From assembly GCA_965202585.1 (NCBI GenBank), contig OZ241828.1, forward strand, positions 31,248,001-31,312,000: a DNA stretch of 64,000 bases, written 5' to 3'. Origin of the DNA: Thalia democratica. Its lineage: Eukaryota. Below the pieces are notes generated by a model. That model saw only the letters and a list, made by a program, of their open reading frames with translations. It made no database searches and was not told the DNA's origin. Below, piece after piece: positions 2,541 to 50,452 of this stretch; position 1 is the stretch's first letter; every line of letters begins with the position of its first letter. Both the position numbers and the translations under genes were made by a program.

Positions 2541-3259
2541 TTATCGTAAACTTTAATTTGATAGTACAAAGTTAGTACTATTCAATACATATTTACTCAA
2601 AGCAAGCTTTTATTTTGTTATACATTTTAGCCGTAGTTGCATTTTTAAATAATTATTAGTTTAAGTTTCTACTTTATGTTCAAAAAAGTAAACAAGTAAA
2701 CAAGTCAATTTTTAATATGTACATTTTTAAGAGTTAATTTTTCACGTAAAGTTAACGGAGTATATACATTTAAAACATTTCATACAAAACAGTTTTTATA
2801 TGGTATAATATGATGCGTTATTTTTAATTTGGTCTGTTTAAGTCTTAACTTATATTCAATTTATTAAAAAATATCTTTTTCATTATCTTCACATATAATT
2901 TATTTTATTTGTTTCCCTAAATAAACACTAGGTTTTTAAAAGAACGATAAATAAATACTTGTTCATATATTTGATTATATAAAAATTTCTTTTAAATTTC
3001 GAAAATTTATTAACAAAAATTATATTAACAAATGACCAATAAATATATTTTATATGTTCTTATATAATTATAATTGTAAAAGCGGGTAGCAAATTATACT
3101 TTGAACGAAACATCAGAAAAAATAAAAAATAAATTTAAGTGATAAAAAAAATTCTGTAACTTAGCTCTTAACTGTTGTCCAGGTTCGAAGATCGTAGTTA
3201 TCAGAAATCCTCCTCACTCAGAGTTATAATGGGTAGCGGAAGTAGGTGAATAGCAGCTT

Positions 3260-4510
3260 GTTGTTGCATAGCAACTTGTTGTGGACTGACATCTCGTTGT
3301 TGCATAGCAACTTGTTGTTGACTAACATCTCGTTGTTGCATAGCAACTTGTTTGTGGACTAATATCTCGTTGTTGCATAGCAACTTGTTGTGGACTGACA
3401 TCTCGTTGTTGCATAGCAACTTGTTTGTGGACTAATATCTCGTTGTTGCATAGCAACTTGCTGTGGACTAATATCTCGTTGTTGCATAGCAACTTGTTGT
3501 GGACTGACATCTCGTTGGTGCATAGCAACTTGTTGTGGACTGACATCTCGTTGCTGCATAGCAGCTTGTTTTGGTCTATCATCTCGTTGTTGCATAGTAA
3601 CTTGTTGTGGACTAACATCTCGTTGTCGAATAGCAACTCGTTGTGGACTAACATCTCGTTGTTGCAGAGCAACTTGTTGTGGACTAACATCTTGTTGTTG
3701 CATAGCAACTTGTTGTGGTCTAACATCTCGTTTTTGCATAGCAACTTGTTGTGGTCTAACATCTCGTTGTCGAATAGCAACTCGTTGTGGACTAACATCT
3801 CGTTGTTGCATAGCAACTTGTTGTGGACTGACATCTCGTTGTTGCATAGCAACTTGTTTGTGGACTAATATCTCGTTGTTGCATAGCAACTTGCTGTGGA
3901 CTAATATCTCGTTTTTGCATAGCAACTTGTTGTGGACTGACATCTCGTTGGTGCATAGCAACTTGTTGTGGACTGACATCTCGTTGCTGCATAGCAGCTT
4001 GTTATGGACTGACATCTCGTTGTTGCATAGCAACTTGTGTTGGACTGAAATCTCGTTGTTGCATAGCAACTTGTTGTAGACTAACATCTCGTTGTTGCAT
4101 AACAACTTGTTGTGCACTGACATCTCGTTGTTGCATAGCAACTTGTTGTGGTCTAACATCTCGTTGTTGCATAGCAACTTGTTGTAAACTAACATCTCGT
4201 TGTTGCATAGCAACTTGTTGTGGACTTACATATCGTTGTTGCAAAGCAACTTGTTGTGGACTGACATCTCGTTGCTGCATAGCAACTTATGGTGGACTGA
4301 CATCTTATTGTTGCATAGCAATTTGTTGTGGACTAACATCCCGTTGTTGCATAGCAACTTGTTATGGACTAACAACTCGTTGTTGCATAGCAGTTTGTTA
4401 CGATCTAACATCTTGTTGTTGCATAGCAACTTGTTGTGGTCTAACATCTAGTTGTTGCATAGCAACTTGTTGTGGTCTAACATCTCGTTGTTGCATAGCA
4501 GCTTGTTGTG
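3260..4510 (-). repeat. Coding-derived minisatellite, 36-bp unit, about 35 copies (MQQRDVSPQQVA)
   Basis: Unit ATGCAACAACGAGATGTTAGTCCACAACAAGTTGCT on the minus strand; several 37-bp variants shift the frame. It explains the overlapping ORFs at 3201-4451. Confidence 0.95.
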
Positions 4511-4585
4511 ATCCAGCAGCTTGTTCTTTCTTATGAGCTTGTATTTGCTTAGTAAGATGTTGCAGATTGAACTCTTGCTGTGTTT

Positions 4586-5647
4586 CAGGGGCGTGTTTTG
4601 TCTGGTTTCCTGTTTCTTTTGAACCCTATGAAAAAAAAAGAAAAGAAAAAAGAAAAAAAAAATCTTAGAATATCACTAAAAACGTTGTTTATTGACTTTG
4701 TTTTGGTTATTTGATAAACTTTGAATAATGAATGTTGAATTTATAACACTGAAAGATAAAAAAGTTTCCTTAACTTAAAATGCTCCTTTTTACCCAGCTG
4801 AAATAGATTTTAAAAAAAATAATTGTGACGTCATAAAAGGTAGAGTTTTAAAGTAGCAATTTTTTTTCTAGAAACTTTTTACTAAGATGCTTTTAACATT
4901 TTTTGGTAATTACCTAGGATGATGTCGCACTAATATCAAGCTGAAATTATATTGTGTTTAATATCTTTTTGAACAATAATTGTAAGCTTAAAATCAATAT
5001 GATTGATCTAAAACTATTCTTCGTTTTAAACAAGCTACATAAATACATAGTAAGAACTAAATTAATTTCTTAAAAACTAAAATAGTTAATTGATTTTATG
5101 TTACAATATAGGAATGTATGCAAGTTATTGTATCATTTGCTTTATTTTAAAAATAAAAGAAACTAAATATATAAGTTTTATTGGTTTATGATAAATAAGT
5201 TTTATTTATGTATTAATAAAATATATTTTTTAAGCCTATAATTATGATAAAAAACAACATTTAATTTAATATAATTTTTAGTTTGATATTGGTGCGACAT
5301 CGTCCGAAATAATTAACCTTTTTCTTTGTGAAGTTTCTTTTTTTTTAGATTAAAATAATTAAAAAAATGCTTTTGTTATAAATATAATCTTTTCCGCCTC
5401 TTTTAGTTTAATTTATCTGAATTTAATACAGTATAATAAATAAAAATATTTAATACTTTTCCATTACTACTTATATGTTTTTTTTTCAATGTAGAAAAAT
5501 AATTTTAAACACAGAGTTTTTCGGCTAAATATTGCGTACTTAACTGGTAGTGCATAATGCATACTTAAGAATTGCGTATTTAAGCGGGAAATTGAGAACA
5601 AAAAAAAATGTGAACCCCCTTTGAAAAAAAGTCTAGACACGCCCCTG
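4586..5647. mobile_element. Non-autonomous hAT-type DNA transposon, 1062 bp, inserted in exon 4 of unit A
   Basis: TIR CAGGGGCGTGT at both ends. 8-bp TSD CTGTGTTT at 4578-4585 and 5648-5655. Removing the element and one TSD restores the frame LTKTQ-QEFNLQH. No long internal ORF. Confidence 0.9.
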
Positions 5648-5751
5648 CTGTGTTTTCGTCAACTGTGGTTGCCTAGAAGTTTGTTGTTCTCCAGTAACTT
5701 GTTGTTGTCTAAGAATTTGAGGTTGTGTAGAAAGTTGAGGTTTCGCAGAAG

Positions 5752-6325
5752 TTTGTATTTGCACACTAGTATTTGGAGGTTTTTGTATTTGCACACTAGT
5801 ATTTGGAGGTTTTTGTAATTGCACGCTAGTATTTGGATTTTTTTGTATTTGAACACTAGTATTTGGAGGTTTTTGCATTTGCACGCTAGTATTTGGAGGT
5901 TTTTTGTATTTGCACGCTAGTATTTGGAGGTTTTTGTATTTGCACGCTAGTATTTGGAGGTTTTTGTATTTGGACTCTAGTGTTTGGAGGTTTTCGTATT
6001 TGTACACTAGTATTTAGAGGTATTTGTATTTGCACTCTAGTGTTTGGAGGTTTTTGCATTTGCACGCTAGTATTTGGAGGTTTTTTGTATTTGCACACTA
6101 GTATTTGGAGGTTTTTGTATTTGCACTCTAGTGTTTGGAGGTTTTCGTATTTGTACACTAGTATTTAGAGGTATTTGTATTTGCACTCTAGTGTTTGGAG
6201 GTTTTTGCATTTGCACGCTAGTATTTGGAGGTTTTTGTATTTGCACTAGAGTGTTTGGAGGTTTTCGTATTTGTACACTAGTATTTGGAGGTTTTTTGTA
6301 TTTGCACACTAGTCTTGAAGGTTTT
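5752..6325 (-). repeat. Coding-derived minisatellite, 30-bp unit, about 19 copies (QKPPNTSVQI)
   Basis: Unit CAAAAACCTCCAAATACTAGTGTGCAAATA on the minus strand; 31-bp variants near 5900 and 6081. Confidence 0.95.
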
Positions 6326-6582
6326 TGTAGCTTTCGAGCTTTTCCTTCCTTTATTATTTGGTAATGAAACCAGTTCTAAAGTAATAATTAAAAGTTTTAG
6401 CAACTACTGTTAAATTAATCTAATATAAAAATCAAGACCTACAGTATTTTTTATAAAACATTAACTCAATAGTTAAGGTGTTTGTTTTTTTTTTTAATAA
6501 CAGCTGTACACAGTCGTGGAAGTTTTTAAAAGTTTTAAAGTAACTAGTATACAAACTTATTATCAATATTGAATTATTTAAC

Positions 6583-6812
6583 CATAACACGATAGTTTTT
6601 CACACGAATTCGTTTTACCATACGCCTTATATCATCGACACTCGGATTCTGATTTTTCAAGAACTCTCGTTCCAGAAATTCTCTCTGGAAATTATCAAAA
6701 CGCTCGTACGGCGCATACCTTTCAGTGACGGATTGATTTGTTAAGGACCCCCTAATGTTATTGGGCGACGCTGTAGTTAAGAAAATTAATTTATCATTCC
6801 TTATCATAACTC
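6583..6812 (-). CDS. Unit A homeobox exon (homeodomain helices 1-2 to residue 46)
   Basis: Acceptor TTTTAACAG, donor GTTAAA. RFDNFQREFLEREFLKNQNPSVDDIRRMVKRIRVKNYRVM has F8, Q12, L16, E17, F20, P26, V45 and joins in phase 0 to NWFHY at 6375. Confidence 0.8.
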
Positions 6813-8689
6813 CTGTTAAAAGGTTGTTAAAATCACATCTTACTAAGTAAATTAGTTAAATTGGTTTTTATAAATAGTTAATAACTATGTCAAAAATAAG
6901 TGCACTGTGGAAGTTATAAAGCTTAAGTATAAGTGATGTCAAAAACTAAAATTTTATTTAGAATACAAAAATATGTAAAATATGTTATTAACATCTTTAT
7001 CAATTTTGAAAATAGTTATTTCAACTACTGGTTTTTCTAGTATTATAATTCTAACAAACCCTATATAAACGTGTTGACTGGATTACAAAGTTTCGGAAGA
7101 AGAGAATGGTTGGGAATTATATTTACACGTTGGTGTCCAACATAGTCGGGTGAAGGTAAACCCTTCGATGATTAACCGTTTAGGTGACTGCTGTTGCTAG
7201 GAAACTGTTGCCAGATGCTGGAACTAAAGGAGCCTGCAAAAAGTTGGAAGAGGTTGTTGGGGGCATTTGATTGAGCTCTCTGTTTGGATTCTGTCGAAAT
7301 TTGTATTTCAAAGCTAGAGATAAATTGTTAATAAATTTAGAAACTATATAAAATTAATAGTGTATTTGAATAGCATACTTTTACAGAACAGTATTAAATT
7401 TTAAAATGATTGTTATGCTTAAACAAAAAAAATAAATTAATCAAAAGTTGACCTGTTTGGTAGTAAAAGCTTTAGCACGTCCAACTCTTGCAGTAGGAAA
7501 GTTACTTTGGTGTTGGGGACCACCCGGAAAGCCAGGACTTCTTCTAAAGAAAAGGAGGAGAAAGGGAGAGCTTCCCTGAAAAAATCTTTGATTTGGGGGA
7601 TTTTCTTGAAGTAACATTCTTGGAAAGGAGTTTTCCTGAAGTGGAAGTTTTGTACTCAAGAATCTTCCTTGTTGTGAAAATGTTTGATTTGTCGAGATGT
7701 AGTTACAATTGCATCTGTATAGAGGGCACGAAATACAATCCGTTTGGTCCATTTTTTTCAATTTTGTTCTGCTTTTTTAGAGGTTATTTACAACACCTGT
7801 AGTTAATAATAAACACTTATAAAAGAAGATCATTAGTTAATAAAAAAACCTTTAAAATAAGAATGCTATCTAGATTTTAACTGTACCATTAATAATTCAT
7901 AAGTATAGCTCAGTTTGAACGTCTAAGAAAGTTTTACATTTTCAAAAATACCTATTTCTGACTTTAACCTTAATTAAGCAAATAGTTTGCTTCATATACA
8001 TTAGTAAACAAAGTGTTTACCATATAAACAGCTTAGTGTATGCTAGAATTGCTGATTGCTTACAATTTCCCCTAAACAAAAAAGGTTTAAGTTTTGTTAT
8101 TATCGAGGTATACTTAATTAGTAGTATTTTAATATTGTTTTTTAAAATTGTTATAAAAAATAAAATTTTTCTAGTATTACTTATAACTATCTTTTAAAAA
8201 AGTATTTATAGCATGTGTTTTACTATAGCTTATTACTTTCTATATAATTCTTCATTTGTCCTTTAACGTATTTTTTAGTAAATGTATTACTTAATAGTTT
8301 TACTACTGTCGAAACTTTGAATTTAAAAATATATTAAAGTTTTCAAAGAATTCTATTTCGTTTACGTAAATATATATATATTTTTCAGTAAAATCATTTC
8401 TTTTTTAAAGTTGTACTAGTGATTTGTTTTGTTATACAAAAATTAATTTTATCTAACCAAAAACTAAATTTATTTTATAATATTTATTGGCCATTTTTAT
8501 TTAGTTTTCTTTATCTAGTATATAAGTCAAGATATATTTTAAACTAAATAAAAATAGCTTTTTTATAATACAAACACCTTATGGAACTTACGATGAATTA
8601 AAATATTTAGACACTTTGCTAAAGTAATATATTTTATCAAAAAAAAAAAAAAATCACTACAACGTAAAAAGGTTTATTCCCAAATCTTC

Positions 8690-8792
8690 AATTTTAAAAA
8701 GCGTTTAATCATTCGTGTAATAATTTGAACTTGGCTACTTATTAACGCGTAGGTCAGGATTCGGCAAACTGCTGGCTTTGATATGCTTATAC
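8690..8792. promoter_or_regulatory. Conserved upstream block of unit A (putative promoter or 5' non-coding exon)
   Basis: The block aatcattcgtgtaataattt...ggcaaactgctggctttgatat recurs upstream of units B, C and F. Function is inferred only from conservation and position. Confidence 0.4.
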
Positions 8793-11700
8793 CAGGGGCG
8801 TCGCGTGGGGTGGCACACTGGAGCTGCAGTCCCACCTTTAAAAAAAGAAAAAGAAGAAAAAAGAAAATTTCCCTTTATTCAGTTTTCCTGCTTTTTTTCC
8901 ATTGAACTTAACGATAAATTTGTTAGTTTTTCAAATTTTACATTCAGTTTTCAAATATTCGTTAAATGGCTGGCGCTGCAAGCTAAAACTGTGTGTGCTG
9001 CATTTTAAACATATACAAATTTCCTATACAAAAAGTTGTTGAAAAGATTATTTTTAGAGCTGCATTCAATGCAGCGCTGTGTGAATTAAACTGAATATAA
9101 AGAATATAGTGAATATGAATACACTGTTAACTAGTTTTTGAACATTATACATTGAAACAACTACTAGATGTAAACAACTTGAATACAGTGAAAGTAAAGT
9201 TTAGTTTTTGAGGTGAAAGTTGCAAGATCAAAACCCAGTGGTCAACACATATATACAAAAAAAAACTATAATAAGCCAAAAGTTCTAACAAGTTAATAAA
9301 GGACATTATTCTAATAAAAAATTCAAAACTCAATAAATTTATGTGTGTTTTATTGATAATTCTTTAAAAAATGGTCATTAATTGTTTTTTTTTTCATATA
9401 TCATATTTTTTTATTCCAGATTACCTTTAAGTAAAAGAAAAAAAAAGGCTACCTATCTTATTTAGATAAGATAATTGAATTTCTTTTAAATATAAGTAAT
9501 TTATATTTTTGATAACTTTTAGTATTAAAATAAGCAATATGTAGCTAAAAAGTTACATGCAAGTTTTAAATGTAACTGCCTTATATTGATAATAAAATTT
9601 GCATAAAAAATAAAAGTTTTCAAGTTGAAATCTTCAACCTAAAGTTTTCTCAACTTAATGTAAAAATATTTAGAACAAGAATATGATGAAAGATATAAAA
9701 AAAATATTTCAAACTAAAAAATTTAAAAAATCTTAATTATTTTGCTAAAAATCTTGGTTAACAATTACTTAAAATAAAGGAAAAGGTAAGATATAGTGAA
9801 ACTTTTTTTTTTCTGTAAAATTCCTCACATAAAGAACCTGTTGTTGCCTTAGTTTTATTTTAAGCATTTATTTGATTCTGATCAAAAAAAAATTAAAAGA
9901 ACTCTGAAATCACTCCATGATTTCTGTATGGTTTGGCATGAAATTTAAATTAATGTTAAAGCATTTATAAAATAAGTTTATACAGCTTGAGCTTATTTTG
10001 TAGACTTCTAAGAAAACTATAGATTGTTTTGAATTGCTCTTTAAATTGATTTTTGACAAATAGCTAATTAAAGTTGGAGAGCACTAAAATTTTATAATAA
10101 GAGGGAAGTATCACTTAACAAAATCAAACTATATTTTTATCTCCAATTTTTATTATAAGCAAATACATTAAAGTTTTTAGATAAACTTACTTACACAACA
10201 AAAGACAATTCTTATAAATAAAATTATATTAACCTGTATTAAAACTTACAAGTTTTATCTATTTATTTTAAATGAAAAAGTTATTTAAGGAATAAAGTAT
10301 ATAGAAAGTTTGTTAAGGACATAGGGGGTCTATCATTTTTTTATAACAAAAATTAACATTCGAAATTATATGAAAGCGTTACTTATATATTACAAGATAC
10401 TTTTCACATTGAAAAAAAAATCAGCTGTGAAATATCAATACCGTGTAAAAATTTTCACAAATAGTTCAACATAATGAATTTTTTAGGTTGTTTTAAAAAA
10501 TAACAACATGCAAACTACAAATTATAGTGAATGGACTGTGGATCAGCTTAAACGCCTTGATATAAATGCTTTGTATGAAGTTAAAAAGCCAAAGTTAAAA
10601 AAACAGTAGATCAATACCAGATATTTCTAATACCCAAGAGTGTACATCAAGAGGTTTGAAGTTTATTATATGACTAAGCTGTAAGTTTGAACTATATGAA
10701 AAAAGTTAATTATATTTAAATATGTGTTTGTTACTTTGAAAAGAAATTACATCATGAGGAAAAAGTTATTATGTTTACAAAGATTTTTGCAGTTTTAACT
10801 AAAATATTAGCTTTATAACTTAAAGTCTTTAGAGCTAAGGTATTTTTGAAACATTGTTTTATCCTATAATATTTTTTAGCTGAGATTTTAGCAAAGGAGA
10901 AATTTTTCAAGCTTTTTTATATATTTACTTTTCAGGTATTTATAGTGTTATCAACATCAGTTTTTGTAACAACTATAGCACTCAAATAATGAGAATGAAG
11001 AGTTTTTTTTATTAATAGAGTGTGTAAATTTTTTTTTTTTCTAAAAAAAGATAGAGTTTTGTTTTGTGTTTTTTATTAATATTTGTTGTTGTTAAGTATT
11101 AAAGTTTATATGTTACTTTAAAACTTTTAATTTTTATAGTTTGCAAATAGTAAACAACTAAAAATATTTTAATTTATTTTTAATTCTCTGTAGTGAATGC
11201 TACTTTTGAATAAACTTTTTATTTTATTTTTTTCAGATACATTATATGTTTTTAGTTAGTATTTCATTAATTAGATGCTAATGTAAATAGATTATTTTAC
11301 AAATTTTAGTTTTGTTAGTCAACAAATTAAAAACTATCACATAGATTTTGCTTTATTTGTTTATGTTGTATATTTAAACTAATTCTGAATCAACTTCAAT
11401 TATGTTTTTCTTAAAAGTTATTTGTTTTATATAAATATTTTTTGATAGTAGATATAAATGTTTAAAGGTTATTTTACAACTTGTTGTTATTTAATCTGCA
11501 AACAAAGACCTTTTAAAAAAAATTGCTTTATTTGTTTATTATCTATATTGAAAGCTAATTCTGACTAAATTTTGCTTTTTACTTTTTTATAAGTGATTTT
11601 TAATTATATATGTTTTAAAACGTAAGTAGAATTTTATTTAATTTTTTTAGTGTGTAAAACTAATTTAAAAATGATTTAATTTTTTTTACTGCTGTAAAAT

Positions 11701-12449
11701 TTATAATTTTTTCTAGACCTTTGCATTGTAAAAGTTTTTAAAGGAAATTCCTTCTAGTGTGATTTTTTTCAATTATAATGTTATTTTTTACTAGTGAAAA
11801 ATAAGTAAGTAACTCAAAAGAAACAAAGTTACTGTTTAAAGCAATTTGTTTTTAGTTGCTTTAAGAGTTTCTTTAGTTTTTGAGTTAACTTTATAATCTA
11901 CAAAAAAGATATAAATGATATTTTTTGATCCTTAACTTTATTTTGCTCAACATATTTTCTTTTTTTTTTTGTTTGTAAAACTATTCATGCTCAAATAGTT
12001 AAATACGTAGATTTTAAATCTTTTTAATAGTTGTATTGTAAGAAGTTATTAAAAAATGAAAAATAATTATTTTTTAATCTTCGAAAAAAAAACTTATTTT
12101 GCACTTATATATTAGTTATGACAATACATACAAACATTTTATCAATGTATGATATATTGTAAATTAATGTACTGCATTATGATAAATATTTTAAGCAACA
12201 TAGTAATGTATTTCCTTCATAAAATACTTTAAAACAAATTTCTCGTATGTTTGAAAATAAGTATAAAATATATTTTTAATGTATGTTTTTTTTTATTCAT
12301 AACAAGAAGCATTTAAGCTAATATCTTAAACACTTTTAGCTTAAAAATTTCCCTTGAGTTTTATTTTAATGTTTCTAATTGGGGGATTTTTTTAAGTTGA
12401 CAACTCAATCTGCAGCACCCCCTAACAAAAATACCACGCGACGCCACTG
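8793..12449 (+). mobile_element. Non-autonomous hAT-type DNA transposon, 3657 bp, copy 1
   Basis: TIRs CAGGGGCGTCGCGTGG / CCACGCGACGCCACTG. 8-bp TSD GCTTATAC at 8785-8792 and 12450-12457. The empty paralogous site is visible at ~18740-18800. Strand is assigned arbitrarily, to contrast with copy 2. Confidence 0.95.
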
Positions 12450-15400
12450 GCTTATACTGCTTAGCTAAAAACATATCTTTAAAAAAGTAAACTTGATGTA
12501 TTTTTTATGTTAAAAAGATGAATAGTTTGGTTACAATAACAGTGGTTTAGTCTAGATTGCAGCATTTTCTATCTGGTTATTCTTTGGATTGTTTTTTAAG
12601 ATTACTATTTTGAATTAAGTTGAGAATACTTTTTTTTTTTTCATTTAGCATGCCAACATAAAAAATTAGTTATAGATGTATTTACTTTAACAGAATGTTA
12701 AGTATTTAAAAAGCACCCTTAGATAACTGTTTCAAGCAAATTTATGTTAAATCTCTTTTTCTGTGAAAATCAAAGGGAAGAGTAAAAAAGAAAGAATTGT
12801 TTAAATTTTTTTTGCCTTGTAGTATTACAGTTTTAAATTTAGACAAGTATTTAAAATATAAAAAAGTGTAAATTAAAACTTAAGGAAATTTGTTGTTGCT
12901 AATATTATTATTGTTTTTATTTACTGGAAGCATAAATTTGACAGTACTTAATATAATGTTTTCATTTATAAAATTCAATTTCAGTTATGGCAGATTTTAC
13001 TTCTTTTAAGTTAATAAAAATTATGCAATAGTTTGTTTATCTATTCGAATGTTGTAAATTTTTTTTTAATGTTCAATTAAAATTATTAAATTAAGTAAAA
13101 ATTACACTTTTTGCACTAAATACTGATAAGATTAATGGAAAAATATTTCAGCGTATTACATTTTTGCTTTCTTTAGAGAGATTGTAACCTATCATTCAAG
13201 TATTCAACGTTTGCTATAAGTATTTTTTATCTTTTTTATAAGTTGATTGAAAGATCTTTCGTATCTTGACTTGAAAGTAGATATACTTTTTAGTTCTAAT
13301 GTTACTAAACAAGTTGTTAAGTACATTTTTATACACGAAATACAATTAGTTATCGTTTAAGTTTTTTTTTATTTCATTTTGATTAACTAATTGTTTTATT
13401 ATTAAAATTTAAATATTTAAATGATCAAAAATATTATTACATCTAATAGCTCGTAGAAATTTTATAAGTATTTGTTTACGACTCGATAACCGACATACAC
13501 CATGTCCTTAGATCAAACTTTTTAAGCGTTTTTTTTTGTCGTTCACTACACAATTTAATTAAAAAATAGACTTTGAATAAAATATTTAACTACTTAAGGC
13601 TGTATTAAACATTATCTTGTTTAACTTGTGTTTAAGTAAGTAATTTTTTTTTACAACTACATATACTTCAAAAATTTTTGACAAGCAAGGAGTTTTTATA
13701 TGTAGTACGATCGTTGAACGGCTTTTTATAAAAAATATTTCTCGCGGCACATAAAACACGAAGGAGCTCTAGTCTAGATTTTTTTTTAAACTTGTTCTTT
13801 AATGATTCAATTAATAAAATACTTACAACTAGAACTAGTTTTAAAAGAAGAATAATTTTGAAAGCTTATCTTCTCGTTTATAGTCGTAAGTTTGATAGAT
13901 AAATTGCACTGATGAATTATTTATAATCAAAAAAAGATTTGTAAAAAAACTCAATAATTTTTTCATAAGTTTTGAAAGCATGCATGTGTTTAGGTTTAAG
14001 AAAGAACTGTTTGACTTGTCAATCTGCACAAACTATATTATCATTAATTTTTAAAAATACTTAAACCAAGTATAAATAGATAAATGCTGTTGTTATAAAT
14101 TTAAATTTTTAATTTTATTTTGATAAAAATATCATAAATAGTACAAACAGTATTTTTGAACTCGATTTAAAAGCGTCTTAATAACATTTTTGAGAAAATA
14201 TAAAACTAAATTATACTTTTAGTCTAATATTTCATATTATTAATAATAATTATGCTTTTATATAGTATTCCTAAATTATAACGTGTTAAAACAATACGTA
14301 AGATTTTATATACTTATACTTAAATAAAACCTAAACAAATCTGACTTAGTTTAAAATTTTATTTATTCTATGCCAGGTAGATTTTAGAAAACTAATTCTT
14401 AACTGAAGTCTTTAAAAAAAAACTAAACGTTTTATTAGTACTACTTAGGCTTTTTTTTAATTTTAGGCTTAGACTCTTTTTTTTTTATTGAACTAGGTAA
14501 ATTCTCAAATAAATGTTGAAAAAAACGTTTATAAGTTGTTAAGCAGCTTACTTAAGTATCGTTTTGTTTTATTTTGTTTTATTTCTTAAGATTTAAATCT
14601 TCGGTTCACAATAACAAATCAGCTCATAGAGATTTTAAAAGGATATGGTACACGACTCGTAAACCAAAAACTTTTTTTTTTGGGAAACTTCCATTTCTTA
14701 TCTGCGGTCATTTTTCATTAACAATCGAGTCCCACCCGATAAAATCCCACTCAATTCATTGGTTGTACAAATTAAATATTTTTTAAACCCTTGTTTACTC
14801 AAAAGTGCAAAGTTTTTACTATCTAAAATTTAAACTGTTATTTGGTTTTCAACATTAGTTAAACTTTTTTTATTTTTAACTCAAAAAAATTTTTATATAT
14901 TTTTATTATAAATATTTTTAATCTAAATTTAACGGAATATATAAATTTTTAAAATTTACATCAAAACAGTAATTACATGTTTTATATATTTTTTAAATTT
15001 AGTCTTTCTTTGTTAACCATAATCAGTATTTAATATATTAATTTCTATTTTTTGTTTAGGCCTAATATTATCTCCATTTAATTTAACTTATTTCCGTACT
15101 TAGACACTAAGTTTTTTTTTTTTTAAACATAAGAAAATTTATAATAACTACATCATTAGTTAATCATTTAAAAATGTTTATTAACAAAAACTATATTAAC
15201 AAAAAACGTATGAATATATTTTATAAAAACTAATGCAAATATAAAAGTCAACAACCTAACTTTGGACAAAATATTAAATAAAACAAAAAGCAAAGTTATA
15301 TATAAAACTCAGTAAGATAGTTGTTAATTGTTTTCCAGATTCGAATATCGCAGTTACAAAAAATCCTGGTCACTTAGAGTAAAATTGTGTAGCGGAGATG

Positions 15401-38970: not shown

Positions 38971-39011
38971 AATTGTCCAGTAGCTTCGGGTTGCCTAGAA
39001 ATTTGTAGCTG

Positions 39012-40386
39012 TCAAGTAGCTTGATGTTGACAAGAAATTTGTGGTTGTTCAGATTTTTTTATTTGAACATTAGTATTTTTGAGTTGTCGTCGTTTTTTAA
39101 ATTTCTCTCGTCTGGCTTTTGCTCTTCGGTGCCAAAACCAACTCTAAAGTTTTAATAATTAAAAATTGAAGCTTTTTATTTAAATAAGTGATTTATTAAA
39201 ATCTAGACCGATGCTAACATTTACTAACATGTATTCGAAAATATAAATGCTGAATTTCTTTTAGAATAGCTGTATACAGCCGTGGCAGCTTTAAAAGTCA
39301 TTAAGTCACAACTAAACAGTTTTCAATATCTAACCGCTACACGTCTTAAAGGCACACGAATTTCATTTGCAATACGCTTTCTATTTTCTAAATTCGGATT
39401 CTTATTAATCAAGAACGCACCATTCAAAAAACCCCTCTGAAATTCATCCAAACACTGGTTTGGGGCTAATGTTTTTGTGCCGGGCTGGTACCTTAAGGAG
39501 GCTCTATTATCATTTGACGACCCTGTAGTAAACAATGCTAGTTTATTACACCTCCCAACTATATTTGTTTTAGCATGGTAAAAGCACACCTTCCTCATTA
39601 AATAATTAGATTTGTATTTATTTGTAGTTAATTAGTGTAACAAAAATAAAAACACAATGGCAGCTAAGAAGCTTAAGTATTAGTAATGCCTAAAATAAGA
39701 GTTTTTTGTAAGTTTATTACTAATAAAATTAAACTACTATATACAGTTTTTATTTCAAAATTTTTAAAATTCTTCCTTCTTATGAAAATAGTTACTTTAA
39801 CACCTTACTTTTTGTTATGGTTTTTGATACAGCTAATTAAACAAACCAGTAATTGGATAATTAGAATATTGGGAACTGAAATGGTTTGGATTTAGACTTA
39901 GACGTTGTTGTCCAACATAATTGGGTGAATTTAAACTCGCTAATGGGTAACCATATAGGTGATTACTGTTGCTAGGAGGAGTTTGTTGTTGCCAGAGTGC
40001 TGAAACTGAAGGATTCTGGTGAAAGTTAGGAGAGGTTGTTTATTATAAAATTTAAGTTTTAAAAGTACAAATAAATTGTACATTATTAATTTAATAATTG
40101 TTTGAACATAATGTTGTGTTAGGATTGCTTATAAAGAATAGTATTAAATTTTGAAAATAAAAAATCTGCTAAAATAAAAAGATAAAATATAAACTTTCAC
40201 AGGTCCAACGTTAGCAGTAGGAAAGTTTTCTCTGTGTCGGGGATCACCCTGAAAACCAGGACTTCTAATTTGTGGTCTGGGATGAGGAAAAGAGAGTGGG
40301 GAGCTTCCCTGAAATAAAATTCTTTGATTTTGGGGATTTCTCTGTTGTGAAAACCTTGGATTTGAGGAGGTGTTGTGTTTGTCCAT
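39012..40386 (-). CDS. Unit F: short PRD-like homeodomain protein (~238 aa) or pseudogene
   Basis: Possible exons 40386-40195, 40015-39847, 39558-39335, 39143-39012 join in frame if non-ancestral splice sites are used for intron 1. Helix 3 is RVA|SWFWHRRAKARR. It lacks both the Cys motif and the terminal motif. Confidence 0.6.
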
Positions 40387-41439
40387 TTTTTAGTACAATT
40401 TTTTAGACGTAATTTACAACACCTGTAAACGTAACTATTTTAAATTACAAATTAATACTTCTTACACAATTATAAAGTAATTTATTTCAACCTAAAAGAT
40501 AACAATTGAAGGTATCATATTTTTGACAAGTAGATTAATTTAACATTAACATAACTTTTAGTATCTATGACTTTTCTATATTTTAAACAATTTTTCCTCT
40601 AAATAAACATCAGTTAATAAAATTTCATTCTATAAGAACTATATTGAGATTTTAACTCTACTATTAATAAATGCATAAGTAAAACTCAGTTTAAACATCT
40701 AACAAACAGATTGTAAATTTTTAACTTTAGCTATTACTGTGGTTATCTAAATAAAGCAAATAAGTTACTTCAAGAAAAAAATTAAATCTAATTACTTAAT
40801 TTATAAACAGATTAGTATTTGCTTTAACTTCTGTTTACTTACAACTTCTACTAAGTTTTAATACCTAAATTTTGCTATAATCATTTAGGTGTTATTTATC
40901 ATTGTACTGTCTATTTGATTAGCATTGTTTGCTACTTTTTCTAAACTGATAAAAAAAGTTGAGATATTTATTTAACTACCCTTAACTTTACCTTAAAAGT
41001 ATTCATAGTAAATGCTTTACCTTAAAGTGATGTGACTATTGAAACTTCAAATTTTTATTTGAAAATATGTACATAAGTTTTCATAGTATACTAGTTCGTT
41101 AAGGTATATATAAAAATAGCTTACGACTAAAACTTATTTATTCAGAATGGTACTAGTGATTATTTGTGATATACTAAAATTAGTTTATCTAACCGATAGT
41201 AAAATTTGTTTTTAAATATTAAACAGTCATTTTCATTTAGCTTTGTTTATCTAGTATATGAGTTGAATCATTTTTTTAATTCATAATAAAATATATTCAT
41301 ACAATCCAAAAACCTAATGGGATTTACAATGGCTTAAACTGTTAAAAATGTTTTTTAAAACTAATATAATTGTATTAAAAACTTTAAATTACTGTAACGT
41401 GATAAAAACTTTATTCTCGAAACTTTAATTTAAAATTTT

Positions 41440-41530: not shown

Positions 41531-43002
41531 TTATTTAGCTAAAAACATACCTTAAAAAATTAAAGTTGATGCAATTAATTTAAAAACTAGGCTTTCACTA
41601 TAAAACATGTAACTACTAAGGTTGTGTTATAGCTTGTTTTGCTAAACTCGTGGATTAAAAAAGTAATTTTTATTTACCACTATATATACTTCAAACAAAT
41701 TTTGATTTCAAAAACATTTTTATATGTAGTACGGTCAGCAATTAGCTTTATCTAGGAAATATTCCTCGCGACATATAGAACACTAAGAAGCCTGAGTTTA
41801 GATAATTTGTAAAACTTGTTCTAACATGACAAAGTTAATAAAAGTACTTGTATTTAGAATCAGTATTAAGCAGATAATATTTTTTTTTCTTGTGTTAATA
41901 GTCGTACGTTTAATATATATTTTGCACTGATGAATCATAAAACGAGATTGATAATTTTGAAATGTTTGTTAAAAAAAACTTTGAAAAAATACATGTTTTT
42001 TAATTCAAGCTAGACCTACTTCAACTTTTAATATGCAAAAACTGTATCTTCTTTATCATGACTTGTAGAAAATCTTAAACAAAACATAGATAAATAGAGA
42101 TGTAAAAATATAAATACTTATAGGCCTAATTTTTTTTTATCTTATTTACATTTTATTAAAATAAATAAGATTTTATCAAAAAGCAAAAACATTTATTGTT
42201 TTTGTTGAAGAAACACTAATTATATACATTATAAAACTAAGAAAAAAAATGCAATTTAAAATATTTACGAAAAAAAATAGCTATGTTTCTGTAAACGTTT
42301 AATTGAAATATTAGTAATTTTTAACTTATTAAGAGAATACATTATGATAAACAGAATAAATTATAATGATAACCGTTACCTAAGTAGTACAAGTAAAGCT
42401 TAACTTATTGAATGCATTAATTAAGATAATAAACTAAATTTTATAAATCAATGAAAACTTGAAACAAATTTTATTCAAATTATATTATACATATTTTATA
42501 ACAAACGAAATGTTAAGAACTATTTTTCAACTCAAAAATTGAGAAAAATATTGAACGCGTTATTAATGTTTGTTAAGCATATGATAAATAACTCAAATTA
42601 AAATATATGAATTAAAAGGAGCTGTTATCAACCATATTTTGGAAAGTTTTGATTGTTAGTTTATAAATACCCAACAGCCACTTAATAAAAAATTTAGTTG
42701 TGGAATTATCGTTAACTATAATCTGATTGTACAAAGTAAATACTAATCAATTCTTACTTACTGAAAACATGCACTTTTTTTTAATACTTTAGCCGTATCT
42801 GTATTTTTCAGTATCTGATAATTAAACTTTCTACTATAACCTTTAAAAAAGAAACCAGTTATTTCTTAACGTAAATATTTTTAAGAATTTAATTTCAATC
42901 TAAAGTTAACGGAATACTTAGACTTTTAAAATGTCATTCAAAACAGTATTAGTATTGCATAATTAGAAAGAGATTTTATTTTTAAAATTGATCGGTATGA
43001 AC

Positions 43003-46000
43003 CAGTGGCGTCGCGTGGTATTTTTGTTAGGGGGTGCTGCAGATTGAGTTGTCAACTTAAAAAAATCCCCCAATTAGAAACATTAAAATAAAACTCAAGG
43101 GAAATTTTTAAGCTAAAAGTGTTTAAGATATTAGCTTAAATGCTTCTTGTTATGAATAAAAAAAAACATACATTAAAAATATATTTTATACTTATTTTCA
43201 AACATACGAGAAATTTGTTTTAAAGTATTTTATGAAGGAAATACATTACTATGTTGCTTAAAATATTTATCATAATGCAGTACATTAATTTACAATATAT
43301 CATACATTGATAAAATGTTTGTATGTATTGTCATAACTAATATATAAGTGCAAAATAAGTTTTTTTTTCGAAGATTAAAAAATAATTATTTTTCATTTTT
43401 TAATAACTTCTTACAATACAACTATTAAAAAGATTTAAAATCTACGTATTTAACTATTTGAGCATGAATAGTTTTACAAACAAAAAAAAAAAGAAAATAT
43501 GTTGAGCAAAATAAAGTTAAGGATCAAAAAATATCATTTATATCTTTTTTGTAGATTATAAAGTTAACTCAAAAACTAAAGAAACTCTTAAAGCAACTAA
43601 AAACAAATTGCTTTAAACAGTAACTTTGTTTCTTTTGAGTTACTTACTTATTTTTCACTAGTAAAAAATAACATTATAATTGAAAAAAATCACACTAGAA
43701 GGAATTTCCTTTAAAAACTTTTACAATGCAAAGGTCTAGAAAAAATTATAAATTTTACAGCAGTAAAAAAAATTAAATCATTTTTAAATTAGTTTTACAC
43801 ACTAAAAAAATTAAATAAAATTCTACTTACGTTTTAAAACATATATAATTAAAAATCACTTATAAAAAAGTAAAAAGCAAAATTTAGTCAGAATTAGCTT
43901 TCAATATAGATAATAAACAAATAAAGCAATTTTTTTTAAAAGGTCTTTGTTTGCAGATTAAATAACAACAAGTTGTAAAATAACCTTTAAACATTTATAT
44001 CTACTATCAAAAAATATTTATATAAAACAAATAACTTTTAAGAAAAACATAATTGAAGTTGATTCAGAATTAGTTTAAATATACAACATAAACAAATAAA
44101 GCAAAATCTATGTGATAGTTTTTAATTTGTTGACTAACAAAACTAAAATTTGTAAAATAATCTATTTACATTAGCATCTAATTAATGAAATACTAACTAA
44201 AAACATATAATGTATCTGAAAAAAATAAAATAAAAAGTTTATTCAAAAGTAGCATTCACTACAGAGAATTAAAAATAAATTAAAATATTTTTAGTTGTTT
44301 ACTATTTGCAAACTATAAAAATTAAAAGTTTTAAAGTAACATATAAACTTTAATACTTAACAACAACAAATATTAATAAAAAACACAAAACAAAACTCTA
44401 TCTTTTTTTAGAAAAAAAAAAAATTTACACACTCTATTAATAAAAAAAACTCTTCATTCTCATTATTTGAGTGCTATAGTTGTTACAAAAACTGATGTTG
44501 ATAACACTATAAATACCTGAAAAGTAAATATATAAAAAAGCTTGAAAAATTTCTCCTTTGCTAAAATCTCAGCTAAAAAATATTATAGGATAAAACAATG
44601 TTTCAAAAATACCTTAGCTCTAAAGACTTTAAGTTATAAAGCTAATATTTTAGTTAAAACTGCAAAAATCTTTGTAAACATAATAACTTTTTCCTCATGA
44701 TGTAATTTCTTTTCAAAGTAACAAACACATATTTAAATATAATTAACTTTTTTCATATAGTTCAAACTTACAGCTTAGTCATATAATAAACTTCAAACCT
44801 CTTGATGTACACTCTTGGGTATTAGAAATATCTGGTATTGATCTACTGTTTTTTTAACTTTGGCTTTTTAACTTCATACAAAGCATTTATATCAAGGCGT
44901 TTAAGCTGATCCACAGTCCATTCACTATAATTTGTAGTTTGCATGTTGTTATTTTTTAAAACAACCTAAAAAATTCATTATGTTGAACTATTTGTGAAAA
45001 TTTTTACACGGTATTGATATTTCACAGCTGATTTTTTTTTCAATGTGAAAAGTATCTTGTAATATATAAGTAACGCTTTCATATAATTTCGAATGTTAAT
45101 TTTTGTTATAAAAAAATGATAGACCCCCTATGTCCTTAACAAACTTTCTATATACTTTATTCCTTAAATAACTTTTTCATTTAAAATAAATAGATAAAAC
45201 TTGTAAGTTTTAATACAGGTTAATATAATTTTATTTATAAGAATTGTCTTTTGTTGTGTAAGTAAGTTTATCTAAAAACTTTAATGTATTTGCTTATAAT
45301 AAAAATTGGAGATAAAAATATAGTTTGATTTTGTTAAGTGATACTTCCCTCTTATTATAAAATTTTAGTGCTCTCCAACTTTAATTAGCTATTTGTCAAA
45401 AATCAATTTAAAGAGCAATTCAAAACAATCTATAGTTTTCTTAGAAGTCTACAAAATAAGCTCAAGCTGTATAAACTTATTTTATAAATGCTTTAACATT
45501 AATTTAAATTTCATGCCAAACCATACAGAAATCATGGAGTGATTTCAGAGTTCTTTTAATTTTTTTTTGATCAGAATCAAATAAATGCTTAAAATAAAAC
45601 TAAGGCAACAACAGGTTCTTTATGTGAGGAATTTTACAGAAAAAAAAAAGTTTCACTATATCTTACCTTTTCCTTTATTTTAAGTAATTGTTAACCAAGA
45701 TTTTTAGCAAAATAATTAAGATTTTTTAAATTTTTTAGTTTGAAATATTTTTTTTATATCTTTCATCATATTCTTGTTCTAAATATTTTTACATTAAGTT
45801 GAGAAAACTTTAGGTTGAAGATTTCAACTTGAAAACTTTTATTTTTTATGCAAATTTTATTATCAATATAAGGCAGTTACATTTAAAACTTGCATGTAAC
45901 TTTTTAGCTACATATTGCTTATTTTAATACTAAAAGTTATCAAAAATATAAATTACTTATATTTAAAAGAAATTCAATTATCTTATCTAAATAAGATAAG

Positions 46001-46659
46001 TAGCCTTTTTTTTTCTTTTACTTAAAGGTAATCTGGAATAAAAAAATATGATATATGAAAAAAAAAACAATTAATGACCATTTTTTAAAGAATTATCAAT
46101 AAAACACACATAAATTTATTGAGTTTTGAATTTTTTATTAGAATAATGTCCTTTATTAACTTGTTAGAACTTTTGGCTTATTATAGTTGTTTTTTGTATA
46201 TATGTGTTGACCACTGGGTTTTGATCTTGCAACTTTCACCTCAAAAACTAAACTTTACTTTCACTGTATTCAAGTTGTTTACATCTAGTAGTTGTTTCAA
46301 TGTATAATGTTCAAAAACTAGTTAACAGTGTATTCATATTCACTATATTCTTTATATTCAGTTTAATTCACACAGCGCTGCATTGAATGCAGCTCTAAAA
46401 ATAATCTTTTCAACAACTTTTTGTATAGGAAATTTGTATATGTTTAAAATGCAGCACACACAGTTTTAGCTTGCAGCGCCAGCCATTTAACGAATATTTG
46501 AAAACTGAATGTAAAATTTGAAAAACTAACAAATTTATCGTTAAGTTCAATGGAAAAAAAGCAGGAAAACTGAATAAAGGGAAATTTTCTTTTTTCTTCT
46601 TTTTCTTTTTTTAAAGGTGGGACTGCAGCTCCAGTGTGCCACCCCACGCGACGCCCCTG
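43003..46659 (-). mobile_element. Non-autonomous hAT-type DNA transposon, 3657 bp, copy 2 (inverted relative to copy 1)
   Basis: Same TIRs and same length as copy 1; TSD GTATGAAC at 42995-43002 and 46660-46667. Reverse complement of 8793-12449 with only scattered substitutions seen (e.g. YYSFFLY vs YYSCFLY in the passive ORF). Confidence 0.95.
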
Positions 46660-47023
46660 GTATGAACCATAATCAACATTCAATATATTTAAAATTATTT
46701 TTCGCAAAATATGCACATATTATTTTTTTTGTTTCCCTAATTAGATACTAAGTAATTTTAATAATGATACTTAAAATGTTTCAATACTTGTTCTTTAATT
46801 TACTAGAAAAAACAATTGTTTTTAGTTTAAAAAATTTATTAACAAAAATTATACAATCAAAATACAAATAAATAATTTTATAAAATACAGTACAATTATA
46901 AATGTAAAATCGACAAGCAGCTTATACTTTTAACGAAATACAAGTTAAATAAAACATAAACAAAAGTTATAAACAAAACCTAAATGTAAGCTCTTAATTT
47001 TCGCCCAGGTTCAAAAGTCGTAG

Positions 47024-48337
47024 TTACAAAAAATCGTTCTCAGTTAGAGTAATAATGGGTGGCGGAGACAGTTGCGTAACTACTTGTTGTTGAGTAGTAG
47101 TTTGTTGTTACATACCTTCTAGTTGTCCATTAGTTTGTTGTTGTCAAAAATTTGTTGCTGCGAACTAGCTTGTTGTGGCCTAGAAATTTGTTGCTGCGAA
47201 GTAGCTTGTTGTTGCCTAGGAATTTGTTGCTGCGAAGTAGTTTGTTGTGGCCTAGAAATTTGTTGCTGCGAAGTAGTTTGTTGTTGCCTAGGAATTTGTT
47301 GCTGCGAAGTAGTTTGTTGTTGCCTAGGAATTTGTTGCTGCGAAGTAGTTTGTTGTGGCCTAGAAATTTGTTGTTGCGAAGTAGTTTGTTGTGGCCTAGA
47401 AATTTGTTGCTGCGAAGTAGTTTGTTGTTGCCTAGAAATTTGTTGCTGCGAAGTAGTTTGTTGTTGCCTAGAAATTTGTTGCTGCGAAGTAGCTTGTTGT
47501 TGCCTAGAAATCTGTTGTTGCGAAGTAGTTTGTTGTTGCATAGAAATCTGTTGCTGCGAAGTAGTTTCTTGTTGCCTAGAAAGTTGAGGTCGACCAGAAA
47601 GTTGAGGTTGTGCAGATTGTTGTGTTTCTTGATATCTTCGTTCTCGAAACCACTTCTATAATTTAAAAATCATACAACAGCAGTTAAACTAATCAAATAT
47701 AAAAAACTTCTTCTAAAGTAACTTTTCATAACATCTCTCTGATAATTAAGCTGCTTAATTTTGTTTATATCAGCTGTGCACTTTCGTTGAGGCTTTTAAA
47801 AGTTTTAAAATAACTAGTATACACTTATTGATATCTAACCGCTACTTTATTCTCTGTCACACCGATTCGCTCTGCAATACGCCATCTATCGTCGAAATTC
47901 GGATTCTGGTTCATCATGAACACACCTTCCAAAACACCCCTCTTGAAATCATTAAAATGCTGATGCGCCGCTAATCTTTCAGTGATAGGTTGATACGTTA
48001 GGGACGCTCTGATATTGTTAGGCGACCCTGTTGTCAAGGAAACTAGCTTACTACTCCTTATCATAACTTTATTTTTTAGGCATAGCAAAAGCACACCTTT
48101 CATTCATTCAAATTTTATCAGTAAATAATTAGACTTGTGTATATTAGTAGTTAATAAATGTAACAAAACTAAGAAAACAGTTGCAGCTAACATAATTTAA
48201 TCGAAAAACATATAAAATTCTTCTTAATTATGAAAATAGTTATTTAACCCCTTACTCGCTGATGGATAATCATATAGGTGACTGCTGTTGCTAGGAAACC
48301 CTTGTTGTTGGAGTGCAGGAATTGAAGGATTCTGGTG
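47024..48337 (-). CDS. Unit G: PRD-like homeodomain gene, 5' part in the assembly gap
   Basis: Exon 2 is visible from the gap to 48256 (donor GTAAGG); homeobox exon 48066-47840; exon 4 from 47655 (KWFRERRYQE). Open to TAG at 47119. A 1-nt shift near 47145 and a TAA near 47108 separate it from the terminal PPPIITLTENDFL* at 47024. Confidence 0.75.
47150..47575 (-). repeat. Coding minisatellite, 36-bp unit, about 12 copies (SRQQQTTSQQQI)
   Basis: In-frame array in unit G exon 4; its unit differs from the 36-bp unit of unit A. Confidence 0.95.
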
Positions 48338-48437
48338 NNNNNNNNNNNNNNNNNNNNNNNNNNNNNNNNNNNNNNNNNNNNNNNNNNNNNNNNNNNNNNN
48401 NNNNNNNNNNNNNNNNNNNNNNNNNNNNNNNNNNNNN
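48338..48437. other. Assembly gap (100 N)
   Basis: Run of N. It probably hides unit G exon 1 and the start of exon 2, so the true size likely exceeds 100 bp. Confidence 1.
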
Positions 48438-50305
48438 TACTTTTTCACAACTAATATCAAAAGTTGAGATATTTATGTAACTACCTATATATTTCCCTTA
48501 AAGGTTTTTATAGAACAAAATATTTTAAATATAAGTTATGAGACTATTGAAACTCTATGATTTTAAACTATGAAAAAAAAAGTTTTCATAGCATACTAGT
48601 TATATGTAATAATAACTCTTAACAAAATGTTTTTTTTTTAGAATTGTACTATTGATTATTTGTGTCAACTAAAATTAGTTTCATCTAGCCGATATTACAA
48701 TTTGTTTTAATTTTAAAATAATTATTACTATTGAGTTTTGTTTATCTAGTATACGAGTTGAATCATTTTTTAAGTTAAAATAAAATATTTTCATATAATC
48801 CAAAGTCCTTATTTGGTTTAAATTGAATTAAACTATCAAAAAAATTTCTTAAACAAAATAATTTCTTTTAAAAAATGTAGATCACTCTAACGTAATAAAT
48901 ACTTTACTCCATAGTTTAAAATTTTAACTTGTACTTTTAAAACTAACTTGTTAAATTTCTTTTTTAAACAGTTAAAAATATTTTTGAATCCATCTAAATC
49001 ACATTAATAACGTTTTTAAGAAAGTATCAAATTAAATCATCTTTTAATAATTTAAGTAGTTACGTTTTTTTATAATATTAATAATGACAAGGTATAAACT
49101 ATCCTTCTTTTTTTACACCGACTAATGTTTCTGTTTGTTAACGGATTAACACACTTCAACTGATATATGTAAATAAACAGCTGTATAACTGTAATACTGT
49201 AAGGAAAGAATAAAAATATAGTAGTTGTATACATATGTCCATTAAAAATAAAAATAATTATTATAGATTTTTTTAGGTTAAAGGTTAATGATAGATACAA
49301 TACTTAATGTTAAATCCAACTGTATTAAAACTATATAACATTTGTTTTTATCAACTCTAAATGAAATAACAGCAGTTTTTTGTACACCAGGTTCTCAGAC
49401 CAAAACATTTTAAGATTTTTTTTCTCGTTCAGTATAAAATATTAAATTGAAATCAAATTTCATTATTAGAGATAAAAGAGTATTTGAACATTTCTAAAAC
49501 TAATTCTGCAAACTAGTAAAATGGTTAATATGATTATTTTAAATTTAAAACTTAAAAATTTACTAAGATATTACACTAGTTCGTAAAACAAAACTATAAA
49601 TCATGTAAGTTTTTCTTAAAAGCATTAATGTTAGCAACTATTTTGATATTTTATGCTGCGAATAAATATTAGTTTAATATATAAAAAGAATATAGCAAAA
49701 CCATAAAAACTAATTTGAGGAAAGTTTAATTGTTTTATTACACCAAGTAAATGAAACTACATAACTTTACTACTGTTGACCGAAACTAAATAAACTGCGA
49801 CTTAACATTGACATTAGTTTCACAATTAATTAATTAGTTTTTTTTCATATAGTTTAGTATTATAAACAAATAACTATTCAATACTTGTTTACTTAAAACA
49901 TGTACAGTTATTTTTCCTTGATATTTTACCGTTTTATAATTGTTTAATATTTAGTACTAGTTTATTTAAACTCAAAAAAATTCATTAATTACTTATTAAA
50001 GTTTTTAATATGTTTATTTTTATCTAAACTAAACGAAATACACACACGACTAGAACTCAAATTAAAACAATTTTTTTGTCGTACAATTATACTTTTTACT
50101 TTTAGTAATTTCAAATCAAAATTAGTTTTTATTCTATTTTAAAACCTTTGTTTTTTGTATCATCTACTCGATTTACTTTATTGGTTATTTCCGTATTTGG
50201 TCACTACGTTTTTTAAAGAATAATATCTAAACAATTAAAAAATATTGATTTTTTTCCTAATTATAACAAAATTGTTTTTAAATTTTTATATATTACAGAC
50301 AAAAG

Positions 50306-50452
50306 CTATTTTAAACCTGGATTTTCTCTAATTTGAGTTGTGGGAGGCTTAGGGAGACTTCCACAAAGTAGCACTCTTTGATTTGTTAAGTTGTTGTTCT
50401 TGTGACAACTGCATTCAAATGGAAAACATTTTTTACAACCTGGTTCTTGCAT
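50306..50452 (-). pseudogene. Unit H: isolated, truncated exon 1
   Basis: MQEPGCKKCFPFECSCHKNNNLTNQRVLLCGSLPKPPTTQIRENPGLK*; closest to unit E exon 1. Confidence 0.75.

Follow-up and report, generated by a model that had tools for sequence, protein, structure and literature searches.

Fast-evolving tandem arrays of homeobox genes are best known from mammals, in which the ETCHbox, Rhox, Obox and DUX genes act in totipotent or germline cells. Here we describe an array of homeobox genes in the pelagic tunicate Thalia democratica. It lies in a window of 64,000 nucleotides (assembly GCA_965202585.1, contig OZ241828.1, positions 31,248,001 to 31,312,000; coordinates below count from the first base of this window) and consists of eight units, designated A to H. 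We consider it likely that the locus is a lineage-restricted, fast-evolving and highly divergent tandem homeobox cluster in birth-and-death turnover, with three intact open reading frames (ORFs) and five decayed copies, and that unit B encodes a DNA-binding transcription factor.

The eutherian ETCHbox genes (ARGFX, LEUTX, DPRX and TPRX; PMC4904359, PMC8208926) are likewise lineage-specific, arranged in tandem and highly divergent, with gene loss, pseudogenes and changes in copy number. An intron between homeodomain codons 46 and 47 is found in both, and TPRX1 has Y8 and Q-Y-P-N at residues 24–27, as in the B/C type of the array. The ETCHbox genes, however, are CRX-derived members of the PRD class with K50, an intact N51 and pre-implantation expression, whereas the array is known from genomic sequence alone, has N51 replaced in three copies and features an N-terminal cysteine (Cys) motif and coding minisatellites.

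Fast-evolving PRD-like homeobox genes in large tandem arrays, with pseudogenes among them, are also known from the mouse Rhox and Obox clusters (Rhox: PMC2211742), but these genes are mammalian, X-linked or located on chromosome 7, expressed in reproductive tissue or oocytes and devoid of a Cys motif, and no sequence relationship to them was detected. In DUX4/D4Z4, too, a divergent PRD-like homeobox gene is repeated in tandem. DUX genes have two homeodomains per unit, are intronless and lie in near-identical 3.3-kb repeats, whereas the units described here have a single split homeodomain, are 65–80% identical, measure 1.4–4.6 kb and are separated by long spacers. Novel homeobox genes of lophotrochozoans (PMC5322547) and the ANTP mega-array of the anemone Actinernus (PMC10598428) belong to other classes and other phyla, but illustrate that orphan, tandem-duplicated homeobox families are common across animals.

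Organisation of the array

The analysis established the anatomy of the units, the identity of their homeodomains, which ORFs are intact and which are broken, and the patterns of constraint. Self-BLASTN and clustering of stop-free fragments yielded eight co-oriented, paralogous units on the minus strand between 3.2 and 50.5 kb, with pairwise identities of 65–80% (E-values 1e-8 to 1e-144). The window is very AT-rich, with an overall G + C content of ~24% and short islands that reach 30–34%.

Four exon types (E1–E4) are common to the units. E1 begins at the ATG, encodes the motif C-x2-C-x4-C-x-C at residues 6–16 and ends at the boundary ACAG|GTyAAyTT in phase 0. E2 is rich in Q, P and N with the core QQQGFPSNS. 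E3 is entered through a phase-1 acceptor and its last codon is homeodomain codon 46, while E4 starts with x-W-F, continues with a Q-rich coding minisatellite and leads to a short tail. The phases are common to the units as well (E1 donor 0, E2 acceptor 0, E2 donor 1, E3 acceptor 1, E3 donor 0, E4 acceptor 0). In the homeobox exons, GT follows immediately after codon 46, and AG with the x-W-F helix-3 exon is found ~0.2–0.5 kb downstream. This phase-0 intron between codons 46 and 47 is present in A, B, F and G, and its positions are kept in C.

An initial annotation, made from the sequence alone, had proposed eight co-oriented units with shared exon boundaries and phases, five of them with a homeobox split by the 46/47 intron. 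Both proposals held, the former by self-BLASTN, fragment clustering and junction reading, the latter by matches to PF00046 in A, B, C, F and G together with a W-F helix-3 exon after the intron. Its division of the homeoboxes into two subfamilies was reproduced by protein identities, which are 41–53% among A, F and G, 68% between B and C (over 28 residues) and ~26% between the subfamilies. The mixture of intact (B, F, G) and decayed (A, C, D, E, H) copies also fits the birth-and-death evolution that it had suggested.

That the units are assembly artefacts, i.e. collapsed or duplicated copies of one gene, has a negligible probability in our view. The window does contain two N gaps and a 99.8% identical, inverted pair of 3.7-kb elements. 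Nevertheless, the units diverge by 20–35%, and indels, minisatellites and lesions are peculiar to individual units. Unit B was recovered in contigs of three independent public runs (two organism labels), at a depth equal to that of its surroundings and with ~1% single-nucleotide polymorphisms (SNPs). Based on the divergence and on the even depth of unit B in three independent runs, the units are not assembly duplicates; such duplication is what the initial annotation had named as fatal to its reading. In addition, a Tara Oceans contig (L001) repeats the exon–intron layout of unit G. Each copy of the 3.7-kb pair is flanked by a separate 8-bp target-site duplication, and L001 shows an empty site, which points to a transposon instead of a misassembly.

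All units are in one orientation. Tunicates use operons and trans-splicing, and multi-homeodomain proteins exist. A conserved, acceptor-like TTTACAG followed by GTGTTGTAAAT is found ~45–60 nt upstream of the E1 ATGs (7800, 18105, 40430 and 50500), also in L001, and may be the acceptor of a trans-splice or of an intron in the 5' untranslated region (UTR). These features would suit one long transcription unit, either an operon or a single gene with several homeodomains. We regard this as very unlikely, since every unit comes with a separate ATG exon and stop and with ~1 kb of conserved sequence upstream, and since the spacers of 2–12 kb hold transposons and a gene on the opposite strand.

Outside the upper end of the array, three blocks at 52574–55308 match the 3' flank of unit F (37722–38974) with 69–78% identity. 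They contain no recognisable exon and may be what is left of a ninth unit.

Intact units

Unit B (15474–18056, minus strand) is the best candidate for a working gene. All of its junctions are GT..AG, and splicing of E1 (18056–17823), E2 (17592–16911), E3 (16302–16109) and E4 (15839–15474) yields an ORF of 491 codons without a stop. In the spliced reading, E1 carries the Cys motif, E2 the QQQGFPSN repeat, E3 homeodomain residues 1–46 and E4 helix 3, which precedes a Q-rich region and the stop codon.

Unit F (39012–40386, minus strand) has a spliced ORF of 226 codons, again with GT..AG at all junctions. It is composed of E1 (40386–40195), from which the Cys motif is deleted, E2 (40015–39847), E3 (39522–39335) and E4 (39143–39012, with helix 3), and it lacks the tail.

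Unit G (47119–48337, minus strand) features at least 266 open codons in its visible part, which comprises E2 (48331–48256), E3 (48027–47840) and E4 (47655–47119). In E4, helix 3 is followed by 12.7 copies of a 36-bp repeat, QQQTTSQQQISR (Tandem Repeats Finder). E1 of this unit is unobservable due to an assembly gap, an N run at 48338–48437 between the upstream block of G and the 5' edge of its E2 (48337). The upstream block (48438–48925) is homologous to 40933–41439, upstream of F. In unit F, E1 and intron 1 lie between the two corresponding landmarks, which are separated by ~0.9 kb. By this comparison, the gap probably hides ~0.9 kb including the first exon of G, and its stated length of 100 N is probably not correct. 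No frame was read across the N run and nothing was filled in; ORFs listed over it are meaningless. In the related contig L001, ~0.88 kb with an E1-type ORF lie between the corresponding flanks, which is a property of L001 only.

Compared to the background stop frequency on the minus strand of 8.2% per codon, open frames of 491 (B), 226 (F) and 266 (G) codons are not expected by chance (P ≤ 4e-9).

The homeodomain and its class

PF00046 was scored on E3 alone, with a cut-off of 22.9 bits. All five E3 exons matched the profile. The score exceeds the cut-off in B (30.8 bits), G (25.3) and A (23.8) and narrowly misses it in C (20.3) and F (19.5), where 28–40 residues are aligned. The matches span profile positions 2–7 to 34–46 and end at 45/46 in A, B, F and G and at 34 in C.

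From residue 47 onwards, helix 3 reads YWFHNRRPKERK in B, NWFHYQIIKEGK in A, SWFWHRRAKARR in F, KWFRERRYQETQ in G and R*FQNR*HK in C. The core residues W48, F49, N51 and R53 are all present in B. With W and F kept, F has H51 and R53, G has E51 and R53, and A has Y51 and I53. Helix 3 of unit C is broken by stops and reads F-Q-N-R. W48 and F49 are invariant between the paralogues, whereas the base-contacting residues 47, 50, 51 and 54 differ. At residue 50, A and B have H, F has W and G has R, and Q50 occurs in pseudogene C only.

Besides the core of helix 3, unit B keeps R3, R5, L16, F20, R52 and K55, and it has Y8, H50 and P54. DNA binding and a role as transcription factors are inferred. With R3, R5, W48, F49, N51 and R53 retained, unit B is most likely still a gene for a transcription factor that binds DNA in a sequence-specific manner; H50 and P54 probably give it an unusual specificity. 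Homeodomains that lose N51 are usually no longer capable of canonical DNA binding. In A, F and G, N51 is replaced and the N-terminal arm is non-basic, and for this reason DNA binding in this subfamily is probably altered, weak or absent.

The initial annotation had assigned the family to the PRD-like class. In favour of this are the position of the 46/47 intron and the Y/N25-P26-N27 motif; C shares Y25-P26-N27 with TPRX1, and N-P occupies residues 25–26 of A, F and G. Sequence similarity, on the other hand, is equally weak to En/Cdx and to Pax6/Al, and none of A, B, F and G has the S, Q or K at residue 50 that is used as a criterion for PRD-like homeodomains. The intron position was one supporting argument for the placement of HOPX and LEUTX in the PRD class, but does not define it (Holland et al. 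2007, PMC2211742). A PRD-like affiliation is thus plausible but unproven.

A real but less probable alternative is that the family is of homeobox origin but belongs to another class, ANTP-like or, given H50, CUT-like, in which case the 46/47 intron would have arisen by convergence or would carry no information, given the shuffled introns of a tunicate genome. When residues 1–46 of B were compared to solved structures, engrailed and CDX1/2 came first, followed by Pax6, bicoid and aristaless, all of them weak (E ≥ 0.002). Identities counted by hand were 33% to EN1 and 32% to TPRX1 (sequences from the supplement of PMC2211742), and W-F-H-N occurs only in CUX proteins within the human homeodomain alignment. 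Against another class speak the motif at residues 25–27, aristaless as the sole solved-structure match of unit G (E 0.6) and a DUX-type cluster that ranked first in a search with protein-language-model features (0.82, a lead only). No CUT or other partner domain was detected either: the Pfam scan revealed no CUT domain, and the rest of the homeodomain is unlike that of CUX, with which H50 is shared. A paired domain is also lacking, as the Pfam scan of the E1 exons matched no family and the spliced B and F proteins leave no room for a domain of 128 residues.

Cys motif, repeats and tail

Units A, B, E and H carry the Cys motif, which has been deleted from F and cannot be observed in G. QQQGFPSN, taken by the initial annotation as a repeat typical of the family, is repeated in B only (42-bp unit, 11.6 copies) and occurs as a single copy in A, E, F and G. 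The minisatellites in coding regions (3260–4510, 5752–6329, 15608–15753, 17023–17512 and 47131–47586) have unit lengths of 18, 30, 36, 42 and 54 bp, all multiples of three, and their copy number varies strongly by unit, from 2 to 35.

The tail has the consensus P-x-P-I-I/L-T-L-S/T-E-x-D-F-L and is found in A, B, C, D and G. In B, its remnant (PSPLHNFTLSDQDFL, 15357–15434, minus strand) is in the frame of E4 but lies behind two in-frame stops. In G, the tail (LSPPPIITLTENDFL, 47027–47107, minus strand) is out of frame with E4, and the preceding frameshift is shared with L001. The tail of A lies far downstream and out of frame, and F has none. No present copy therefore encodes the architecture of Cys motif, QQQGFPSN repeats, homeodomain and tail that had been attributed to the family. 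Because the tail is never in frame with an intact ORF, this four-part architecture is ancestral at best; unit B is two point changes short of it.

The ancestral gene would have comprised four exons. Its E1 would have encoded the N-terminal C-x2-C-x4-C-x-C motif and a disordered linker, E2 a region rich in Q, P and N, E3 homeodomain residues 1–46, and E4 helix 3, followed by a coding minisatellite rich in Q and by a short tail of acidic and hydrophobic residues. Of its putative descendants, B, F and G remain uninterrupted ORFs and the other five have decayed.

A block of ~100 nt extends over the stop codon of the tail (~3140–3245, 15290–15400, 20590–20690, 22960–23065 and 46965–47070, minus strand). 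It is ~80% conserved between units, compared to 65–70% for the homeobox exons, and substitutions in the tail block show no clear third-position bias. Possible roles of the block are that of an element in the 3' UTR or of the joint at which tandem units recombine. A structured RNA was ruled out, as RNAalifold on the tail and 3' flank gave -2.3 kcal/mol and no consensus fold; Rfam had no match anywhere in the whole window. The tail as a separate exon was also rejected, since no convincing acceptor was found and stops lie upstream of the only good donor.

Relatives and lineage restriction

Close relatives were located on two contigs from a single Tara Oceans marine metagenome assembly: L001 holds an orthologue of unit G, and L002 a relative of the B type. 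In a word-index protein search, the E3 ORF of G retrieved L001 as the only contig and the E1 ORF of B retrieved L002 as the only contig; the E3 ORF of B had no match in this search. L001 reproduces the exon–intron layout of unit G. L002 is a paralogue of B with ~75% identity, not its orthologue, and carries open QQQGFPSN repeats.

An exhaustive phmmer search with E3 of B against 1.84 billion representatives gave seven matches and no close relative. These were mostly multi-homeodomain proteins with scores summed over several stretches, and the top match was a repeat protein without a homeodomain. DNA-pattern scans of Joint Genome Institute metagenomes with the tail block and with the E1 start resulted in 0 matches each, and literature searches retrieved no description of such a family for tunicates. 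The lineage specificity claimed at the outset was thus borne out, and a lineage-restricted tandem array of divergent homeobox genes with a phase-0 intron at 46/47 is supported.

Coding constraint and expression

In every unit, broken ones included, exons have a G + C content of 36–46% and introns of 19–26% (41–46% and 21–23% in unit B). The 186 + 42 coding bases of the homeobox contain no indels among A, F, G and L001, whereas the flanking introns show 9–36 gap columns between the paralogues A, F and G and 1 between G and L001. Nei–Gojobori omega values, which are rough due to the extreme base composition and the few sites, were 0.37–0.62 overall, ~1 in helix 3 and, where estimable, 0.05–0.19 for the 16 codons before the homeodomain. 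Between B and L002, E1 (80% identity) and the head of E2 (83%) are gap-free, and the intron is 70% identical. Omega for this pair was 0.17 for codons 1–22, which include the Cys motif, and 1.3 for the linker. These patterns fit selection, now or recently, on the Cys motif and the homeodomain scaffold, with linkers that would drift and copies that would die often.

Several observations weigh against working genes at this locus. The only public runs that hold it are genomic, with a depth of ~100–140 even over introns and spacers and no splice joints; single contigs from these three runs pass through the introns of unit B unspliced. A run search restricted to RNA-Seq listed none. E3 of G is 91% identical to that of L001, compared to 94% for the introns, and L001 lacks the core residue F8. 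N51 is lost in A, F and G (Y, H and E, respectively), and B has its P54 within the recognition helix. The tail is encoded by no intact ORF, and the conservation of its block runs ~60 nt beyond the stop codon. The argument from ORF length is inflated, as Q-rich repeats are intrinsically stop-poor. Among the SNPs listed for unit B, 2/2 in the homeobox exon are synonymous, in favour of constraint, and all of those in E1 and E2 are non-synonymous; these numbers are small.

Taken to their end, these observations would make the whole array a graveyard, in which B, F and G are pseudogenes too and working members, if any, are located elsewhere in the genome. The genomic-only coverage without splice joints, the exon divergence between G and L001 that is no lower than that of introns, the missing N51, the tail cut off or frame-shifted in every copy, the non-synonymous SNPs in E1 and E2 of B and the demonstrable damage to five of the eight units would all be in line with this. 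We nevertheless judge it rather improbable. ORFs of 491, 226 and 266 codons are open across GT..AG junctions, homeobox exons are free of indels next to indel-rich introns, exons and introns contrast strongly in G + C content, the Cys motif is conserved towards L002 and both listed homeobox SNPs of B are synonymous. The reading of a cluster in turnover with three intact members is preferred.

Decayed units

Unit A (3201–7752, minus strand) is probably a pseudogene. It consists of E1 (7752–7453, with the Cys motif), E2 from 7290 (with a 1-bp shift and a stop), E3 (6770–6583) and E4 from 6375. The E4 ORF ends at ~6070, ~2.8 kb before the tail of A, which is located with its stop at 3243–3201. A 30-bp minisatellite lies at 5752–6329 and a 36-bp minisatellite at 3260–4510.

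The remaining four units are pseudogenes or fragments, all on the minus strand. Unit C (20649–21885) is a pseudogene of the B type without E1 and E2, with an E3 remnant at 21885–21692 (two stops), the stop-broken E4 remnant from 21145 and a tail at 20708–20649. Unit D (22942–23100) is limited to the tail and 3' flank block and abuts the upstream block of C. Unit E (35800–36278) features E1 from 36278 to ~36094, with the Cys motif and an internal frameshift, and E2 at 35947–35800, but no homeobox. Unit H (50309–50452) is a truncated E1 with the Cys motif only.

An inverted repeat with 83% identity is formed by 26485–26801 (plus strand) and 35309–35626 (minus strand). Its second copy lies ~170 bp downstream of the E2 homology of unit E, and this copy may have removed the homeobox exons of that unit.

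Other elements in the window

The 3.7-kb element is present in two copies in inverted orientation, at 8778–12457 (plus strand) and 42995–46676 (minus strand), which are 99.8% identical. It has terminal inverted repeats (CAGGGGCGTCGCGTGG...), each copy is flanked by its own 8-bp target-site duplication (GCTTATAC and GTTCATAC), and a long ORF is lacking. The empty site in L001 corresponds to the second copy (42995–46676). The element resembles a non-autonomous DNA transposon of the hAT-like kind with recent activity.

Inside the array, but on the opposite strand, an intronless gene of 221 codons at 27110–27775 (plus strand) encodes an E2 ubiquitin-conjugating enzyme (PF00179, E-value 4e-44). Its active-site motif reads I-S-L-N-V-L, with serine in place of the catalytic cysteine. 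The second assembly gap, at 56564–56721, is located outside the array.

Implications

The locus represents a new homeobox family of a familiar evolutionary kind, namely a fast-evolving tandem cluster. Use of its genes in the germline or early embryo is a speculation by analogy with the mammalian arrays. Bolder and unlikely, though not negligible, is a tunicate-specific kind of transcription factor, in which a conserved N-terminal four-cysteine knuckle would be combined with a homeodomain whose base-contacting residues 47, 50, 51 and 54 are actively diversified between paralogues, much as in an arms race with transposons or satellites or in a rapidly rewired, species-specific programme of the early embryo.

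If the copies are unexpressed, the locus would be a decaying gene cluster of modest interest. If B, F or G is expressed in eggs or early embryos, the array would provide an independent chordate example of the pattern known from mammals. The family is most interesting for the combination of a conserved Cys motif with a homeodomain and for changes at DNA-contact positions that are specific to single paralogues.

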